This document shows positions 3,001 to 27,781 of a stretch of 64,000 nt of DNA, one piece after another (position 1 is the first letter of the stretch; every line of letters starts with the position of its first letter). Both the position numbers and the translations under genes were made by a program. Origin of the DNA: Auanema rhodensis (Eukaryota > Animalia > Nematoda); NCBI GenBank assembly GCA_964057225.1, contig OZ059894.1:17112001-17176000 (forward strand). The letters run 5' to 3'. The notes beneath the pieces were generated by a model. The model saw nothing but the letters and a program-made list of their open reading frames with translations, was not told the origin of the DNA and made no database searches.

Positions 3001-5186
3001 ACTTTTCACCGCCTTTTTGCACTCTGCCTTCACCATTTGTATAATCAAAATTCCATAAAAGAGTCATTAATAAGTTTTATTCTTAACGTGTGAATCAGCA
3101 TTCGGCTTAATGGCCGACATAGAAAGCTCAATAACAAAAAAAGCTGCATCAAGCTTCGATTATCTATATGTTTGATCTGATCAGTTATTGATTGAAATAT
3201 TTCTTTTGTTAAGCCGCAAGTCCATTATTCGCTATTATTCTCTTACTTATCTGTTTATCATATACATAGCTCCAGAATAGTGAAGAAGTTGTTGTATCTT
3301 TTGATTATTCACGAAGATTTTGTATTGCATGTAATATGATTTCATTTTCTTCTTTTTATTCTCGACCTTCATTCAGTCTGACACTTTGAACTCAACTATA
3401 ATACTGAAAACGAATCAGACCGTAGCAGTATTATTGCTTTATGAGCTTATGCGGGCACAGTTGTTCTTACGTATGAAACATGATCTCGTCATACGAAGTC
3501 CTTCAGATATTCTAACACATTCTATCTCTTATTCTTTCTTTCAGTTTTGTCAACTCGTATCCCTCTTTTACATCATTTTCATCGCCTGTCTTAGCATTGT
3601 TTCAATTATGAAAAGTGTCTCTTCACAATCTTTTCCCAGTTCATCCTTAAGGACAATTTGTTCTTTAATAATTTAACAACTCTTTTCTCATTTTGAAAAA
3701 CTTAAAACAATCATTTTTAACGCCAGGGAGCCAAGAAAACTTTTTTGTTCTTTATCTAAAATTCTAGAACAAAAAACCGGAGAAAGATAGTTTTTTGTCT
3801 CCGATTTCACATGCACTCATCCATTCTGCTCATCAGCAGTCATATCTTTATTCCCTTATTCCATACATACATGTGTTTGGATCTTGGCACTATATATCAT
3901 ATAGTTTCATCCAATTAGTTGTTGAGTCCTCATACACAGGCTGTCGACACGTGCCTAATCCTGTTCTAAAATCCTCATTATCTTGTCGATCGTATATGCA
4001 ATGTTTTCATTTGTCTGGTAATCGAACCTAATAAGAAGACTTAATGTTGATAATTTGATCCATACTGCCCTTAAATGAACATAGTTAATCATCTAACATT
4101 CCCATTGCATCTTCTTTGCGTAAGCAGGGAAGAAGAACCACGGAAGAATGGCCAAAGATAGACGGAAGGAAGAGAGCAAGAAAGAAGTTCACAATGAATG
4201 AGAGAGAAGAAAGTAAGAAACGGAGAGAGCACAGAAAATAAGGAAGCAACAGAGAGGGAGAGAGAAATAAAGAGCAAGTACAAAATTGGAAGAAAGGAGA
4301 AAACCCGGATGAACCCAGAACTCTATGCAGCACTTGGGTTGTTAGGGTCACTAGTTGATTGGCTGTCATTCTATTGCATTAAATTCAAAGAGTTGCAAAT
4401 CGATGGAGCCAGACACAAATGAAGACGTGCCTGGAGTTCCTACGAACCTTCGTAAGGAAACTAACGCGCACGCTGGAAGATTCCAACTCGTATTCCACGA
4501 CGTTGCGATCATATGGGTCAGTTTCAAAATGATGTTAGAGTCCATCTTATGCAGACGACATGGTCAAAGTAATTGCAACTATTTCAAATCCTCTAGAGAT
4601 CGAATATCTTAGCTTTGAACTTCTCTATCCAAGCTCATCATCATCATCATCATCATCCTAAAGTGTTCCGTTCCATGGACTATCATAGCAGAAACTTAAG
4701 TGGACTGAAGAAATTCTAACCGTTTTCCAGTTTTATCTAGTAGACTATGGCCATCTGGCCGATTTATCCTTTTCTCCCAATCTTTCATTATTTCTCATCC
4801 TCTGCTTAAGACTATAAGTAAAATTCCGGATATTTGAATATCTCGGCCTCCGTCTTTGATATTCATCTGTATCATTTCTTCTTTTCCTGTTATCTCCGAA
4901 TTTTCATTTCCGTTAAGCATTCGCCTTTTAGGCATTACTGTAATTTTGTATTTTATTTTAACTTGTCATTGAAACTTTGTTTGTACTTAATACTTGCTAT
5001 GTCCTCGTATTTCATTTCACCTTGCTTGCTGAACTAATATCTCTGTCATCTTAGCATTTTTTCATTTTCTTAATCGTTTTCGCTCATTACTTGTTTCTAT
5101 TTGTCCTTCACTTTTCTACAAAAAGTGAGATCTTTTACTTTCAGGTTCCATCCCTTACAGCACATCTTCTTGTGCTCTTTGGGTGA

Positions 5187-7828
5187 ATGGAACGGGGTTC
5201 GCCCCATCGGCAACCGTCGTCTCCTCTTCGAACGAACAATCGAGTAAGTTTAGAATATTCTCATTTTTTGCTAAATTTAAAAAAAATTCAAATCTTTGGA
5301 TACTGAATTTACCTAAAAACTCAATGACTAAATATATGAAGAAAAAACGACCGAACTAGAAAAGAAAAAAATTCTCTCAAGTTATTAGCATATGTTACGT
5401 GACTCACGTGAATTACTAAAAACGCTTCAAAAGTTATTATTTGCTGGTTTTTTTAGTTGATTGGTTGCTAAAATTAATGTATTTTATTTTCTAATATAAT
5501 TGTTATTAAATTTAAGCTACGACTATGCGCATATGTTTCACCAGATGATATTCTTAGTGGACGAGTTCAACTTACAACTCCATGCGCAGGCACAAATCAA
5601 CCTCAAATTCATATAGCCGGCAGTACGAAATCACATTCAAAATCAGCTTTTGAAAATGTCTTCAACACCGATAATAGCCAGGTTACTCCCGTCTTATTAT
5701 TGTTTTTGCAATTATTATTTTAGAATGAAGTATCAACAGCATTATTGCCTGAACTTCTACATACATTCTTTAATGGAAATGACTGTTCATTTCTATCGTT
5801 TGGCGGAAAATCGAAAGGTTAGCCAGATTATAGTTTATTTCGTTGTTTATTTGTTTATAAACCAACCCTCCCCCCATCCATAACTATAACCTACTCATTG
5901 GGTTAATGTATTAAAGGCACACCTTACAGTCTATACTTATGACGTCATTGATCACGAATTTGCGGTTTTGTTTTAACAATGGGATTAGCAAGGTTTAATA
6001 TATTCATGAGCAAGAAAGTGATTGACACTTGTTGCAGGCTATATATAATGCCCTTTAAGAAGGAAAAGGTAGAAAATAATAATAAAGAACCGCTTAAGTA
6101 GGAAACTCTTAGAATCCCTTAACTCCTAGTAAAGTTGACCCACGACTCATTGCTTGACAGGTCATGCCCGGATATGTATATGCGGCACACTTTCACAATC
6201 ACATCCACTTTATGTAAATGAAAGGATTGACGATGTCTTGAGGAATTTTTTCCCGTTTTCATCGGTACAATTCCGGGTGTGAATATGTAAATTATCTCTA
6301 GTTTTGTGCTATCATTACTGTACTACAGTTTTCTTATACTATTATAGTATATTATATTAACTGTTCATATGGTATAATTAAATACTGATGATATTACCAA
6401 TTGAATGGTTGAAAATGTGTGAAGAACCACCAAATATTTACTCGATTATAAGCTTGTAAGATGATGAAAGCTATGTGGTACAGTGTAGGTTAGAATAGAA
6501 GTGAGAGAATGATGACAATATTGAAAGACTGCCTAGTTCTTCAAATTTTACGATGACCGACGAGTCTCCAATTTCAAGAAAGGAGAAGTAGTAGGATGCG
6601 ACTATGCAGAACATAAATATTAGGTTTTGACTCGACAGCTTTCAAGCCTTTTTCACTTAGAGAAAGGACAAGTCCTGGGGGGAGAAATAAAGAATCTCCT
6701 GAGAATTAAAGAATTGTTTCCGCTTTTTCAATGTTTGTTATTTATTTTTGCCCCTAACATATAACAAGTTGTTGCAAATTAAATATTCCGCAATTTATAA
6801 AACTACGAGAGAAAGAGAAATCAATGAAAATATTTCAAAATTATCATATTAGTTTTTGAAATTGAACATATGTTATTTAGGGAAATCTGCTTTACTATAT
6901 GGCAATGGACCTGAATCTCCCGGTCTTATTCAAACTGCGGTGGAATCCGTATTCAATATGATTGAGGAATGCAGGTATTTTCAATTTTTCATATAAAAAT
7001 TACTTAATTGTACTAATCAAGTTTTATAATATTCATACTATAGGTCTAAACGAACTGATGTCCGGTTACAGCTTAGGCTATCCGCACTTCACTATTCCCA
7101 AAGGGAAAACACCTTAACCGATCTACTTAGCACCTTTAATCCAGGTTTGTGACAGATATTCTATTGTTATTGTTGAATAATTTAATCATTGGTTATAATT
7201 GCAATCTTATCATATTTATCTTAGATCCACGCCGACACCCCGTTCGTATAGCTGAAGATAGCCGTTATGGTACGCTGGATATTGAGAATGAAAGTTTAAT
7301 CAAAGTTGAATCTGCCGAACAAGCGCTATTTTATCTGAACAGTGTGATTGATCATCGATTAGTTGGTACGTTTTCTCAGAATACTTGATGTACAAACTTC
7401 ATAACACTCGGGAATGTGAACATATCATATTGGTTGAGAATATAATATTGACACTATAGAAACATGATTGATGATGTATATTTCTAGAAGATGAGGAGAC
7501 ATATCGCTCAAATCATCTATTTATCTTCTTCTCCTTGTATGGATATAAAACGAATGGCGCCGAGCTGGAAGGTATGTATGCCGATCATGATAGTAAACTT
7601 GTCATTCGAGCAATAACATCATTATGACGATCATCACAATCTAAAAGGAATTATATTATATCTACGCTTGCAGGTGGCCGACGTCGTTTTTGCTTAGCAG
7701 ATGTCGGAATTGGCGAACGTAATTCTCAAAAAGGCGAACTGACAATGCCCGTTATTGGAAGCATTCTTTTAGCATTATTTCAAGGACAAAAACATCTGCC
7801 TTCGAGGTATGTTATTAATTGATTGTAA

Positions 7829-22429: not shown

Positions 22430-23992
22430 TTAAAAAGTTTTCCAAGGTTTCTGGATGTATCTGGTATATTCCTCACGAATTATATCGTCATCTGTATCGT
22501 TGATATTTACTGCGTTAACTAACAAATCTTCCAATGATTTCATAGTGAAAACCGGGAACTTCTTCTCCACATTCTTTCTTGATTTACTCAATGCTTCAGA
22601 ATCTTTGAATAATCTACAAAAACTTTTTTTTTTCAGAAAAATGTGAAATAATTAATAAAGTAATAAAGTAATTATCTTCGAAACATTCTAAAAAATTAAA
22701 ATTGTTATTACATGTTTGATTTTTTTTTCTATATTTTCTACATTTGAGCTTGACTTATGATTCACAGGAAACTAGTTATTTCACATACATGTATTCATTC
22801 ATCATAAGCTTAGTTTTGCGTGAAAATTGATTAATTTCGCACTGACCTTCCTACTGCAACAGAGTGGTCAAGCCCAATAAAAGATTCTTCAAAAAGCCAA
22901 TGATGTTGAGGTATATTTTTCTCACAGAATTTTGTTGACAAAATATCACAGCCCGAAAGTATATTAATGACACTAAGTAAGAGATCCAGCACAAACCTGG
23001 ACCATAACTTTCATCAGGATTAACTTCGAAAGAAAACGATCTCAAATCATTCACAATACCAGTACCTGTGGCTTTCAACACGGATTCTTTCAGACACCAT
23101 ATACGATAAAATGCTCTCCATCTGTAAACAATAAGTTGGCTATTTCCAAGAGAAATAGAACAATTTTGATATTATTCTTCGAATTCAATAAAATGAAAAA
23201 AAAAATTTTTTGTTATGATATAATGTATTAGATAAAAACCTGTCAAGTTCCGTTTCAGGTTTTTTAATCGTTTCAAGCTCAATATCAGTAAAGAGTTTAC
23301 TCATTTTCTCAATGTGCTCAAGAGATGAGCTATTCCTATCTTCATCTATTCTCATTACATCAACACCTGCGATGAGAAGTAATTGATTTGATTCGAAGTT
23401 GTTCATTAACTAACCTACTAAGCTTTTGCTGCATGTTGCTAAAACTACTAAGTCCCCTTGATGAGAAATATTGAAGTCTACGGTTGAATTGAATGAAATT
23501 GGTAACATTGGTTTCCCATGTTCTCCTGTAACAACTTCCACATCTTCCCATTTGCATTTGGTTTGATCAATAATAGAATTTCTAAATTTTCGTTTTTAAA
23601 ATACAAGTTTTTGTGAGAATTTTAATTAAATTTATAACAAAAATATTAATAAACCTTATCAAAAGTTGCCCTATCACTGAAGCAAGAGAATCGTTTCGAT
23701 AATGGAAGCGAGATTGTTTTGTGAATACCTCATTAGGAAGACATAAAAGTGCTTTTCTATAAAGCAATTCAAATTGAGAGAGCAGTTCAGTCTGAATAGA
23801 TATTATACAAAACATAGCATAATAAAAATTATTGAGAAACCTTCTGTAGAGAAATTGCCCAACGCAGCCCCATTGCTTAAGATTGAGAACGAATAACACT
23901 TGAAATATGTCGCATAGTTTGAAAAATTATATCTAATTTGACATACACGCTTGAAATAAAGAATTGTATTGTTCAACCGAATTAGCTACCAT
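22430..23992 (-). CDS. Sfp-type 4'-phosphopantetheinyl transferase (AASDHPPT/Lys5 homolog)
   Basis: Spliced translation MVANSVEQYNSLFQASMGLRWAISLQK...GEHGKP...DFNISHQGDLVVLA...VGVDVMRID...FYRIWCLKESVLKATGTG...WLFEESFIGLDHSVAV...QKPWKTF*. It carries the FNISH, GVD and WxxKExxxKAxGxG PPTase motifs. An alternative start lies at 23873. One intron needs a non-AG acceptor (see findings). Confidence 0.9.
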
Positions 23993-24206
23993 TCTGAACA
24001 GACAAAATAAAACAGTTTATTACTAATATTGAAATGCAACAAAGAATGTAGGTCTTACAATTAGGAATAAATGACAATATTATAATTTCTCTCGAGAAGG
24101 GAAAACCACAATCGGTTAACCCTGGCAATTATGAAAAATATTTAAAGATACTTATATAGTATCTTTTCTAAACAACCTGTACTCGACTAGTAAATCACGA
24201 TTCATA

Positions 24207-27200
24207 TTACTTGAGCTTGGGTAAACCTAACTTTTTAGCTTCGCTCTCATAAATGAGCAATCGCCACATTTTCACCATGAATACCTCTGCATCATCATCC
24301 AAAATCTAGAACAAATTCAAGTTGAAAAAATTCCCCACAATGAAAAAAACTAACCATAGCAATATCTTTCAATATTACATCTGGGGCTGTTTTCCTGGTG
24401 ATTTTCTCTAAAATGAAGTCGCAAAGTGCTGGTTCTTCCTCTCCTATAATTAGATTTCGTTAGAGGTCAAAAAAAAAGCCAACCTATAAATTCGTTAATT
24501 TTCTTTGAAACCCAAGGTCGCACCCTCTGATCAATCATAGGTTTATCCACAAACGTCCAGTCAATATTAAAGGCGAAAAGATCTTCTGAATAACAAACAT
24601 TTAAAGTTAGAATTTTAAAAATGAATGAAACCTCTGCCTGTAGGTATCCTACTAATAAGGTCTTTAACCATTTTCTTTTTCTCTTCCTCAGTTAACGAAG
24701 CCATTCTATCTTCTTGTGTAATTTCGAATGGCTTTAATCGTTTTCTCTTATAAATGTTAGCATCATCATCTTCATCATCAACGCCTATAGATAAATAGAA
24801 ATAGAATTTATTTAGCATATCAAAAATACCGAATACTCCATTTAATCTTTGTGTGAGATCACGTTTTGGTTGCTGTATAGCTACTGGTGATGAAGCTCCT
24901 AGTTTAACAGGTGCCACAGTATGGGGTGAGTTAGAATTAGCAATATCAACTAAAATCAAAAATACTAAAAAAAAAAGAAAAATAAATTTTTATACCAGTC
25001 CTCCATTTATCCTGTGGGTTCCCAGATTCTCCATTAAGATGATCATCATTACTTTTCTCATCATCATCACTATCACTACTACTGGAACTGCCCCCATCTT
25101 CACCTTGTCCAAGTTTATGATGAGGGTTCGGACTACCACTGTCTGCTCGAAGTCTTCGTAATTCTGCATCTTCCTATACATGCGTGATAAGATAATCAGT
25201 GATTGTTAACAATATATTACCTTTTCTTGATGTCTGCGTCTTGCTTCAGCATCGGCATCTTCGCCGCTTTTGTTTTCAGCAAGAATCTGTCTTTTAAGCT
25301 CTTCAATTTCATTCTGTTCCCGCAATCTGTCTTTGGCATCAGCTTCTCTTTCCTTTTCAAACTCGCGCCTACGTTGGAATAGAGACGAACTCCTTGAATA
25401 GACCAACTTAGAAAAGAATAGAAACTAATCAGCCTACTTGTAATACTTAGGATCGTCTCTTTCGTCATCATAATCCTCTAAGAAAGCTTTCAATTTTTTG
25501 GCTTCTTTCAGAATATTTTTCTTTCTGAATATACAAAATAGAGTGTTGCTTAAACTAAAATATGCAAACCTCTCCTTCTCTCTTCTTTCCTCTTTTTCAT
25601 ATATTTTAGCACGCTCTCTTTCTCTTTTTTCCCAATTTCTGAGTCTGACCATATATGCTGCTTCTTTCTCCTTGATTTGCTTTTTCAATAGCCTTCTCTC
25701 TCTTGCATCGTCGCTATCTTCAGAGTCACGGCTTCTGGACAAAGTAGTCGGTTTAACTTTTCGAAAAAAAAGTGTAACCTGCTAGAACTACGATCCCTTT
25801 TTTTGCGTCTAGGGGAATCTGAACGAGATCTTGAACGTGATGATGAGGATGAACCCGTGCTAGATGAAGATGAGCGCGAAGAGTTTGAAGATGAACGATG
25901 TCTCCGTCTTAATAGAACAAATTTTTAACACGCACCGAATGAAAACAATATACCTTCTTTTAGCGGATCTGCTTCTGCGGTGACGATCACGACTTCTGCT
26001 GCGGGATCTGGAACGTCTACGTCTGCGATCTTCATCCTGAAATTATATCACAAATCAGAAAAGATATACTTTCACGTTTAAAGAACAAATGGTCATCGAG
26101 GACAAGCTAACGATAATAACTAGCCTGTCTCCTTTTGAAAAAATATATCTATATACGTATAAATATATATGAAATCCTGAAACTGTTTAGGTAAAGAAAT
26201 GACATTATACTGCATGCAAATAACGGGGACAACACATTAATTTTTTTTCGTTTTTGAAAAAAAGAGCCCTTATATAGGGAGAGGGTTATGCACAGACAGT
26301 AGACATTTAAATTTGGATACTCACTCGTTCCGTAATTTTCATAAGAAGAGATCACGTCTGAAAGAGAGGGTGGATATATGCTTGTCAAAATTTAAAAACA
26401 GCAACTGGAAAGGTGTGCAACCTGCATGGAAATTGGTATGTACTAGAGCTTCTATTGTAATAAAGTCAACAATCTCTACTGTAAGAAAAAGCTGTGAGGT
26501 GAAAGGTTGATAACCAAGTGCGAAACATAAAAGCATGCAAAAAACACAGGGGCATGGGACGTGCAAAAGAGTATAGGCAAATTAAGAAAAGAGACAGTTA
26601 GAAGCATAAAAGGCAATTAGCTAAAAGTGATTATGAGCACAAATTGAGAAGATCATGTGTCAACCCAGTGAAGAAGCAATTGGTTTTTGCACATACAGGA
26701 CGGCCAGTGAGCACAGATAGTTTATTAGAGATCATTTCTTTGTTAAACATAGGAGAATAAACAACTTACCTTCAACTTTGCGGAAGATTTGCTACCTATA
26801 GAAAGAGATACTATACGTCGAAATAAGGCTAGTATCACATCAAAATCGCTTGCACGCAAATAAAAAATACCCGAGTACTAAACTATGCCTCACCTTTTTC
26901 TTGTCATCCTCCTTTCCTTCTTTCTTTAGTTTGCCATCTTTATCGGATAGTTCACCATCTTAAAAATTAAAAAAACTTATCAGCCAAATTTAAAAAATCT
27001 ATACCTTCTGCCAACATAAGCAGCTCAGGATGATCACTCTCAATCCAGTTAAGAATTTTGAGACGAACCTATAAGACGGCATTATTATGAGAGAAAAGAA
27101 CGGATTAAAAACGTACATCCTCATCCTTTTTCAGATCATCTTCATCGGCGGGAAGTTCTCCTTCTTTAATTTTGAGTGGTGGTTTTCCCAAATCCTTTCT

Positions 27201-27781
27201 GTGTTGAACAGCCCATGTTCGGAGCTCTTCTTTCACTTTATCTTCTGCCTGAAAATTCATTAATAGCAAACTTACTAGAAATTTGAAACCTACTTTAACA
27301 ACTAATTTTTTATCTCCTATTTGGAATTCATTCAAAACCCTTAAAGCCCTTAATGTTCCCTCCGGCGACTCATAATCACAGAATCCGAAGGCTTGATATT
27401 TACCATTAGATCCTTGAATACGTTTCCAGTTTGTAACTGTACCACACTCCTTCAAAGATCTTTAGTAATAAAGTAATTTTATTTATAGAAAACCTGAAGC
27501 ATTTGTTGCATGAACTCATTTGTACACTTCTCAGAAATATTTCCAATAAAAACCGTCGTAACAGGAGTAGATTTAGTAGGAGCTGGAGCTGCTTGCTAAA
27601 AAAAAAAATATTTTGAATCCTGAGATTTTGCGAATACCGCCGATGTTGGAAAAGGGCGAGAAAGTACAGGATTGAAATAAATGGATGGTTGGCTGAATCC
27701 ACCTATAATTAAAAAATTAATACCAAATTAAAAATCATCCTTACCAAATTGGGGAGCGCCAAAACCTGGGCGAAATGCCAT
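24207..27781 (-). CDS. rbm-25: RNA-binding protein 25 / Snu71 homolog (RRM, RS/RE-rich region, C-terminal PWI domain)
   Basis: Starts MAFRPGFGAPQFG. RRM: TTVFIGNISEK...WKRIQGSNGKYQAFGFCDY. RS and ER repeats; AFLEDYDDERDDPKYYK. PWI: RPWVSKKINEFIGEEEPALCDFI...LDDDAEVFMVKMWRLLIYESEAKKLGL. Confidence 0.95.
26770..26795 (-). other. Candidate 26-nt poison cassette exon in rbm-25
   Basis: tctctttctatag|GTAGCAAATCTTCCGCAAAGTTGAAG|gtaagt lies between two phase-0 exons and reads VANLPQS* in frame. Confidence 0.7.

Follow-up and report, generated by a model that had tools for sequence, protein, structure and literature searches.

A conserved, frame-disrupting microexon in the long intron of Auanema rhodensis rbm-25: a candidate poison exon

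In the nematode Auanema rhodensis, a stretch of 64,000 nucleotides (nt) of contig OZ059894.1 (assembly GCA_964057225.1, positions 17,112,001 to 17,176,000) contains rbm-25, a gene of the RBM25/Snu71 type. Its intron 7 harbours a 26-nt cassette that has the splice sites of an exon and that would bring the reading frame to an early stop if included. The whole stretch is referred to below as the window, and positions are counted from its first letter (Table 1). Here we describe this element, its counterparts in other nematodes and its traces in RNA, and weigh the possibility that it serves to limit the production of RBM-25.

The rbm-25 reading frame is uninterrupted over all its exons, as judged from reading the sequence and from a frame-check script; exons were joined solely inside scripts, for frame and stop counts. 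Sixteen of the 17 introns measure 40-49 nt and intron 7 is the sole long one. Exon 4 matches Pfam RRM_1 with 27.4 bits (cut-off 20.7), residues 181-420 have an Arg/Ser/Glu/Lys-rich composition, and exon 18 alone matches the end of the PWI domain with 20.1 bits (cut-off 22), this domain being spread over three exons. An N-terminal RRM, a middle region rich in Arg/Glu/Asp and Arg/Ser and a C-terminal PWI domain mark the predicted product as an RBM25/Snu71-type protein. Identity searches were run with single exons and with segment 27108-27461 of the minus strand (exon 4, unspliced intron 4, exon 5). The closest relatives of the reference stretch are nematode RBM25 proteins with both Pfam domains; the nearest protein is a Heterorhabditis model with 75-83 % identity in two exons, and the A. 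duodenale orthologue was matched exon by exon in tblastn.

Table 1. Features of the rbm-25 locus, in window coordinates (a slash marks the exon border)
Feature	Position	Strand	Remarks
rbm-25 (RBM25/Snu71-type) coding region	24207..27781	minus	18 exons, 665 amino acids
exon 7	26894..26958	minus	65 nt; complete codon at end; donor AAG/GTGAGG
intron 7	26037..26893	minus	857 nt
mini-intron upstream of cassette, after exon 7	26796..26893	minus	98 nt
candidate poison cassette	26770..26795	minus	26 nt; in-frame TGA at 26774-26772
22-nt cassette variant, AG 4 nt downstream	26770..26791	minus	frameshift; stop at start of exon 8
cassette donor GTAAGT, context AAG/GTAAGTT	26764..26769	minus	consensus U1-type
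TGCATG no. 1	26534..26539	minus	230 nt 3' of cassette donor
TGCATG no. 2 (TGCATGCA)	26213..26218	minus	about 180 nt 5' of exon 8
exon 8	25954..26036	minus	83 nt; Arg/Ser-rich region starts here

The cassette is preceded by a pyrimidine-rich tract ending in AG at 26797-26796 and followed by the only GTAAGT of intron 7. According to the frame script, its inclusion after exon 7 appends VANLPQS and a stop to the intact RRM, yielding a product of 207 amino acids plus a 7-residue tail, while direct joining of exon 7 to exon 8 keeps the frame. The cassette TGA leaves 11 exon junctions and about 1.4 kb of message downstream, so that the inclusion mRNA would be unproductive and a likely target of nonsense-mediated decay (NMD). 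The 22-nt variant reads QIFRKVEG before a stop which is the second codon involving exon 8. The donor is by far the best in rbm-25, all 17 constitutive donors being far from consensus. The donor 8-mer, AGGTAAGT, occurs in three copies on both strands of the 64-kb window, which corresponds to an expectation of about 0.01 in intron 7. Since perfect U1 sites seem to be uncommon in the genome, the cassette donor stands out. RNA folding around the cassette gave z-scores of -0.04 in the window, -0.19 in N. brasiliensis and +0.45 in C. elegans, i.e., no structure.

Most of this anatomy had been noticed in an original prediction made from the letters alone. The 26-nt segment with its pyrimidine-rich acceptor and AAG/GTAAGT donor was found again by sequence reading at 26795..26770, and the frame script returned the VANLPQS tail after the RRM and ahead of the RS and PWI regions, as foreseen; the same holds for the 22-nt frameshifting exon obtained from the AG 4 nt further on. 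The prediction had also placed the only long intron, of about 855 nt, at 26039-26893: there is indeed a single long intron, with a 3' end that needs to be moved by 2 bases (26037, 857 nt). Of the two junctions proposed for the included form, 26894/26795 stands and 26770/26038 has to be replaced by 26770/26036, exon 8 starting at 26036.

Orthologous loci were compared in ten other species: A. duodenale, M. belari, P. fissidentatus, S. hermaphroditum, C. elegans, C. briggsae, H. contortus, N. brasiliensis, M. spiculigera and C. bovis. In all ten, a long intron (0.84-5.9 kb) occupies the position of intron 7, before the RS region. Nine of these loci have a full intron map, and in six of them it exceeds every other intron of the gene; in H. 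contortus it comes second, after the intron at the position of intron 5. Within this intron the strongylids A. duodenale, H. contortus and N. brasiliensis have a nearly identical 28-nt cassette, which shares with that of the window the acceptor context, the first bases and the GTAAGTT donor. In the strongylid introns (1.4-2.8 kb) the cassette GTAAGT is again the sole one besides the 5' end of the intron itself. Similarity between the window and the strongylids is seen at the acceptor, the exon start and the donor, as well as in a short block further downstream. For the A. duodenale block, alignment to the window cassette scores 35, compared to a mean of 18.4 and a maximum of 30 for shuffled sequences, and none of 1000 shuffles reached it. 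Together with the rare consensus donor and the single GTAAGT of intron 7, this score places the cassette beyond chance. Global MAFFT alignment and an nhmmer profile of the strongylid introns found nothing in the window intron, the similarity being limited to short islands.

In Caenorhabditis, positional counterparts lie at the same distance from exon 7 and measure 37 nt (C. elegans), 38 nt (C. briggsae) and 41 nt (C. bovis), with invariant acceptor and donor and a variable interior. GTAAGTT is invariant in the six species aligned. None of the cassette lengths (26, 28, 37, 38 and 41 nt) is a multiple of 3, and inclusion leads to an early stop in all five species for which it was computed, i.e., the window, C. 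elegans, C. briggsae, H. contortus and N. brasiliensis. The resulting tails of 2, 3, 7, 13 and 105 codons encode unrelated peptides. A premature stop that is kept while the peptide varies is the signature of a poison exon and not of a coding exon. Judging from these comparisons, the cassette is conserved as RNA and not as protein, with splice sites, position and frame disruption maintained. The surrounding intron is itself similar over large parts within groups, with 67-85 % identity among strongylids and 67-69 % between C. elegans and C. briggsae. Conservation of the exon in orthologous introns, which had been put forward as a check of the original prediction, is thus borne out by the strongylid 28-nt cassettes and the Caenorhabditis counterparts.

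Several other segments of these introns resemble exons. A 25-nt candidate cassette in M. belari was rejected, as it is absent from M. spiculigera. Deep in the orthologous intron, both Mesorhabditis species contain a 31-nt candidate whose acceptor fits the consensus and whose donor is GTAAGTG (locus L003, ~5261-5291; locus L010, ~6364-6394), which may be independent or a displaced equivalent. A second cassette-like block of 49, 49 and 41 nt, ending GAGTC/GTAAGTC, lies deeper in Caenorhabditis intron 7 (L006 ~3046-3094, L007 ~2821-2869 and L011 ~1927-1967); it has no counterpart in the window intron with its one GTAAGT. Elsewhere in the gene, Caenorhabditis and strongylids have a second long intron (0.3-2 kb) which falls inside the single exon 5 of the window (L006 1153-1469, i.e., C. 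elegans intron 5; L008 1527-3534; L009 1724-3657); in the window gene this intron is missing, either through loss or because it was never present. Closely 3' of rbm-25, on the same strand, sequence reading suggests an AASDHPPT (phosphopantetheinyl-transferase) gene at 23000-24000 of the minus strand. AASDHPPT is also annotated next to rbm-25 in C. elegans (L006 6013-6224) and Pristionchus (L004 11826-12018), and a Heterorhabditis model fuses the two genes, which look like a conserved operon-like pair.

The best documented counterpart is that of C. elegans. It occupies the same intron of the same gene, 100-140 nt in, ends in GTAAGTT, has a joint to exon 8 and gives an early stop (EHV-stop after exon 7). 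It differs from the window cassette in length (37 versus 26 nt), in an interior that cannot be aligned, and in being annotated as a start exon with an ATG that is absent elsewhere. The 11 private residues of C. elegans isoform b (P0183) map to L006 1944-1976, inside the 37-nt counterpart; they end at its GTAAGT, which is spliced to exon 8. A recent preprint mentions, as data not shown, reads that link exon 7 with isoform b's first exon (bioRxiv 10.64898/2026.09.14.751627). Taking these reads and the annotated donor joint together, both junctions of the counterpart are on record in C. elegans. In C. nigoni an annotated RRM-only product of 218 residues (P0294) takes its tail from the intron-7 element. 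Its stop is a TAA inside the GTAAGT donor of the element; in this model, exon 7 is therefore spliced to the element, whose donor is read through.

The same preprint reports that C. elegans RBM-25, together with PRP-40, with which it forms a complex, activates the inclusion of microexons and short exons (bioRxiv 10.64898/2026.09.14.751627). Inclusion of exons of 51 nt or less depended on RBM-25, the regulated exons had a median of 36 nt, and the effect was seen from below about 100 nt. It further refers to an unannotated 22-nt microexon in C. elegans rbm-25 itself, predicted to introduce a premature stop (Koterniak et al., bioRxiv 10.64898/2026.09.14.751627), and its authors raise autoregulation of U1 components as speculation only. 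This microexon may correspond to either of two segments. The first is an exact 22-nt stretch between AG and GT with an in-frame TAA in C. elegans intron 5 (L006 1370-1391); its conservation was not seen in C. briggsae, and the window gene is without that intron. The second corresponds to the 3' portion of the intron-7 element; this portion has a length of 21 nt in C. elegans, compared to 22 nt in C. briggsae. Under its older name W04D2.6 (PMC6126614), rbm-25 has been found to undergo isoform changes during recovery from L1 arrest (PMC3460187). Our literature searches returned no report of the present element as a conserved poison exon, and no paper on an RBM25 poison exon with autoregulation. 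For C. elegans the element was partly anticipated by the 2026 preprint, and what the present analysis contributes is the cross-species evidence.

RNA of A. rhodensis was represented by four runs of a single study (X1-X4), in the form of contigs only, which were assembled with 31-letter words. All four hold spliced contigs and hence represent cDNA. GT..AG joints are found at the predicted bases for 15 of the 17 introns, introns 7 and 13 being missing from the listing; 15 of the 16 short introns are thereby seen to be spliced, and the joint of intron 13 crosses a skipped repeat. The rbm-25 mRNA assembles as two pieces ending at the borders of exon 7 and exon 8, and the downstream spliced contig starts 2 nt (a shared AG) before 26036. 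A third contig, 26009-26922 in X1 and X4, covers the entire intron 7 with 28-29 nt of each neighbouring exon; in X2 and X3 the intron-7 contig extends from 26009 to 26797. The word depth of the intron-7 contig is about one third of that of the exon contigs, such depths being a weak measure. Present whole in RNA contigs, intron 7 is retained or detained. A word search with a stop-free reference of 118 residues found no truncated isoform of this species.

The contig end at 26797 bears directly on the cassette. The last two bases are AG in exon 7 as well as in the sequence preceding the cassette, and the first difference lies at the third base from the end. Since both carry AG there, 26797 is the point at which a molecule with exon 7 joined to the 26-nt acceptor diverges from the genome. 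Use of the 22-nt acceptor would predict a break at 26793, and the observed break thus favours the 26-nt form. The cassette and the shared letters amount to 29 nt, less than the word length of the assembler; the branch at 26797 therefore requires a molecule in which exon 7 is joined to the cassette and which runs past the cassette donor, present beside the unspliced form. Contig ends thus provide good but indirect evidence that the cassette acceptor is used and that the part of the intron downstream of it is removed late.

Such a molecule is also what would be expected if the regulated step were the excision of the 733 nt that follow the cassette. The perfect U1 site and the cassette would then hold the transcript in a nuclear, partly spliced state, and output would be set by release from it instead of by NMD of a fully spliced inclusion isoform. 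Intron 7 was indeed assembled from RNA, whole in X1 and X4, and the sole junction-type signal is the form in which exon 7 is joined to the cassette and the sequence runs past the donor. The C. nigoni annotation also reads through the donor, and long stretches of the intron past the cassette are conserved. However, the donor of the C. elegans counterpart is joined to exon 8 in an annotated isoform, pre-mRNA may be over-represented in the runs, and contig depths are unreliable. We consider it unlikely that this switch is the explanation by itself. The detained-intron and poison-exon models can coexist, and a detained-intron component is likely in view of the RNA contigs and the C. nigoni read-through model.

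The remaining alternatives fare less well. Inclusion leaves the RRM intact and NMD is sometimes incomplete, so that the product of 207 residues plus tail could be a functional RRM-only protein, for example a competitor of full-length RBM-25. Yet no two species have a tail of the same length or sequence, and selection is seen on the splice sites and on frame disruption but not on the peptide, which makes a role for this protein improbable. Even less credit can be given to recursive splicing, in which joining exon 7 to the cassette would rebuild a 5' splice site and a second step would remove the cassette with the rest of the intron. The window and the three strongylids do have an AG/GT where the cassette begins, and the upstream-spliced, downstream-unspliced form inferred from the contigs fits the first step. 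However, the rebuilt site is poor compared to the perfect GTAAGT 26 nt away, and the counterparts of the three Caenorhabditis species start with GA or GG and not with GT. The rebuilt 5' site that would define a recursive-splicing exon is thus weak and absent from Caenorhabditis. Moreover, known recursive splicing serves very long introns, and intron 7 is less than 1 kb here.

The C. elegans annotation suggests a different role, namely that of an alternative first exon for an isoform devoid of the RRM: isoform b starts at an ATG within the counterpart, in frame with exon 8. The window cassette, however, is without an ATG, and the 38-nt exon of C. briggsae has CTG at the ATG position, from which it follows that the short RRM-less protein is not conserved. 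In addition, a conserved acceptor precedes the element in every species, and exon 7 is reported to be spliced to the C. elegans element (bioRxiv 10.64898/2026.09.14.751627). A first exon is accordingly very hard to defend. Least probable of all is that the splice-like pair arose by chance and that the intron owes its length to something else (an enhancer, a nested RNA or a repeat, for instance): AG/GT pairs are common and there is no direct junction read, but conservation, the shuffle test, the rare consensus donor and a contig break at the exact predicted base all speak against it, as do the uniqueness of intron 7 in the genome and its lack of an Rfam match. Intron 7 is single-copy in the 181-Mb genome, which speaks against a repeat or transposon origin, and an Rfam scan of it yielded only a sub-threshold match to U3 (17 bits versus a gathering score of 34). 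Its open reading frames are short, with TTG or ATG starts, and none is significant.

Returning to the poison exon, its regulation might involve the TGCATG elements of intron 7. Their presence near 26533 and 26213 in the original prediction was correct (26539-26534 and 26218-26213), and the motif recurs in the orthologous introns. Intron 7 has two copies where about 0.16 are expected, while the whole window shows no enrichment (24 versus 28.7 expected). The nine orthologous introns together contain 20 copies versus 3.4 expected, with similar spacing. The window, three strongylids and two Caenorhabditis have a copy 230-270 nt 3' of the cassette donor. In seven of the nine introns a copy is located 150-330 nt short of the intron's 3' end, and in C. 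bovis one lies about 250 nt before exon 8. The overlapping hexamer GCATGC ranks third of all 4096 (15 copies versus 2.6 expected, in seven of seven lineage representatives) and is the best non-repeat hexamer across the orthologous introns, in which TGCATG itself ranks 14th. CTCTCT/TCTCTC and TGTGTG/GTGTGT are also strongly enriched across these introns, and could be sites for CU- or UG-binding regulators or simple repeats; intron 7 is 59 % pyrimidine on the transcript strand.

In C. elegans, Fox-1 and ASD-1 control UGCAUG-dependent exons, with regulation of the egl-15 and unc-32 type. As in those exons, UGCAUG occurs in the intron flanking the putative alternative exon and is recurrent in orthologous introns, so that the cassette would qualify as a candidate Fox-1/ASD-1 target by motif conservation. 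The sites differ from the known ones in lying at least 230 nt from the cassette and in having flanks that vary across clades.

The explanation that we favour is that intron 7 is a conserved regulatory intron, in which the cassette is delimited on one side by an acceptor of the ordinary nematode kind and on the other by a perfect U1-type donor. If the cassette is skipped, the full RRM-RS-PWI protein would result. Inclusion would place a stop 7 codons past exon 7 and produce an unproductive mRNA, most likely degraded by NMD. More RBM-25 would lead to more inclusion and less productive mRNA. Such negative feedback is the most likely logic because RBM-25 and PRP-40 promote exons of the size of the cassette in C. 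elegans and because the U1 site is conserved. The two TGCATG sites downstream of the cassette would probably contribute information on tissue or stage. Intron 7, at least past the cassette, is kept in what appears to be a sizeable share of the transcripts, and slow removal of that part may be a component of the switch.

Several observations weigh against this explanation. The acceptor signal consists of contig ends and not of a listed joint, in two of four runs from a single study, and the RNA contigs of this species contain no junction of the cassette donor to exon 8 (the joints of introns 7 and 13 being unlisted). The match between the window and the Caenorhabditis cassettes is not significant at the sequence level, their equivalence being one of position and splice sites. 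In Pristionchus and Steinernema the search for a cassette gave only unconvincing GTAAGT-based candidates. The flanks of TGCATG in the window bear no significant likeness to those of other clades, and the 5.9-kb intron of M. spiculigera is devoid of the motif.

On balance, the cassette is very probably a real, regulated alternative exon, and it is likely to act by unproductive splicing. That it is a conserved poison cassette limiting RBM-25 is, as a whole, the reading we lean towards as probable. Control of the cassette by RBM-25 itself, for which the analogy with C. elegans speaks, is given somewhat less than an even chance. Donor use in A. rhodensis, NMD, self-regulation and binding by Fox proteins are inferences from the above observations. 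The original interpretation, i.e., alternative splicing coupled to NMD in the service of autoregulation, therefore holds in that there is a real, conserved, frame-disrupting exon, as seen from the contig breaks and the orthologues, and is conjectural in the rest. Its feedback component gains separate ground from the action of RBM-25 on short exons in C. elegans. In its most complete form our proposal is more tentative still: the RBM-25/PRP-40 microexon activator might be held at a set level by its own RBM-25-dependent poison microexon, gated by Fox-1-family sites and by a slowly removed downstream intron, the arrangement being conserved in clade V rhabditids and C. elegans isoform b being its misread trace.

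Poison cassettes that couple alternative splicing to NMD are present in SR, hnRNP and core spliceosomal genes (Lareau 2007; Saltzman 2008; both as cited in bioRxiv 10.64898/2026.09.14.751627). Like these, the rbm-25 element is a conserved stop exon in the gene of a splicing factor itself, with nucleotides more conserved than the peptide and a conserved intron around it. Unlike them, it has the size of a microexon (26 nt) and a perfect U1 site, and NMD and self-regulation are proposed. It also differs from these poison exons in that splice sites, position and frame disruption are kept, with no long ultraconserved block across phyla. A further parallel is the poison exon of LUC7L, which is under the control of PRP40A (Choudhary & Norris 2024, cited in bioRxiv 10.64898/2026.09.14.751627). 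Both cases concern a factor associated with the U1 snRNP whose mRNA is, or would be, limited by a poison exon, and inclusion in LUC7L needs the PRP40 arm, the partner of RBM25. The two differ in gene and phylum; moreover, the LUC7L case is one of cross-regulation, reportedly demonstrated by knock-down, whereas regulation of the rbm-25 cassette is deduced.

Self-limiting poison exons in splicing factors are already well known as a class. If the explanation favoured here is true, rbm-25 would offer a simple, testable loop in a genetic model organism, with conserved and mutable cis-elements, the consensus U1 site and the UGCAUG sites, already identified. It also suggests that isoform b of C. elegans rbm-25, which is devoid of the RRM, is an artefact of the poison exon. 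The microexon in its own gene would then be the homeostat of the microexon programme of RBM-25, and a size-specific activator would limit itself by means of an exon of the very size that it activates.

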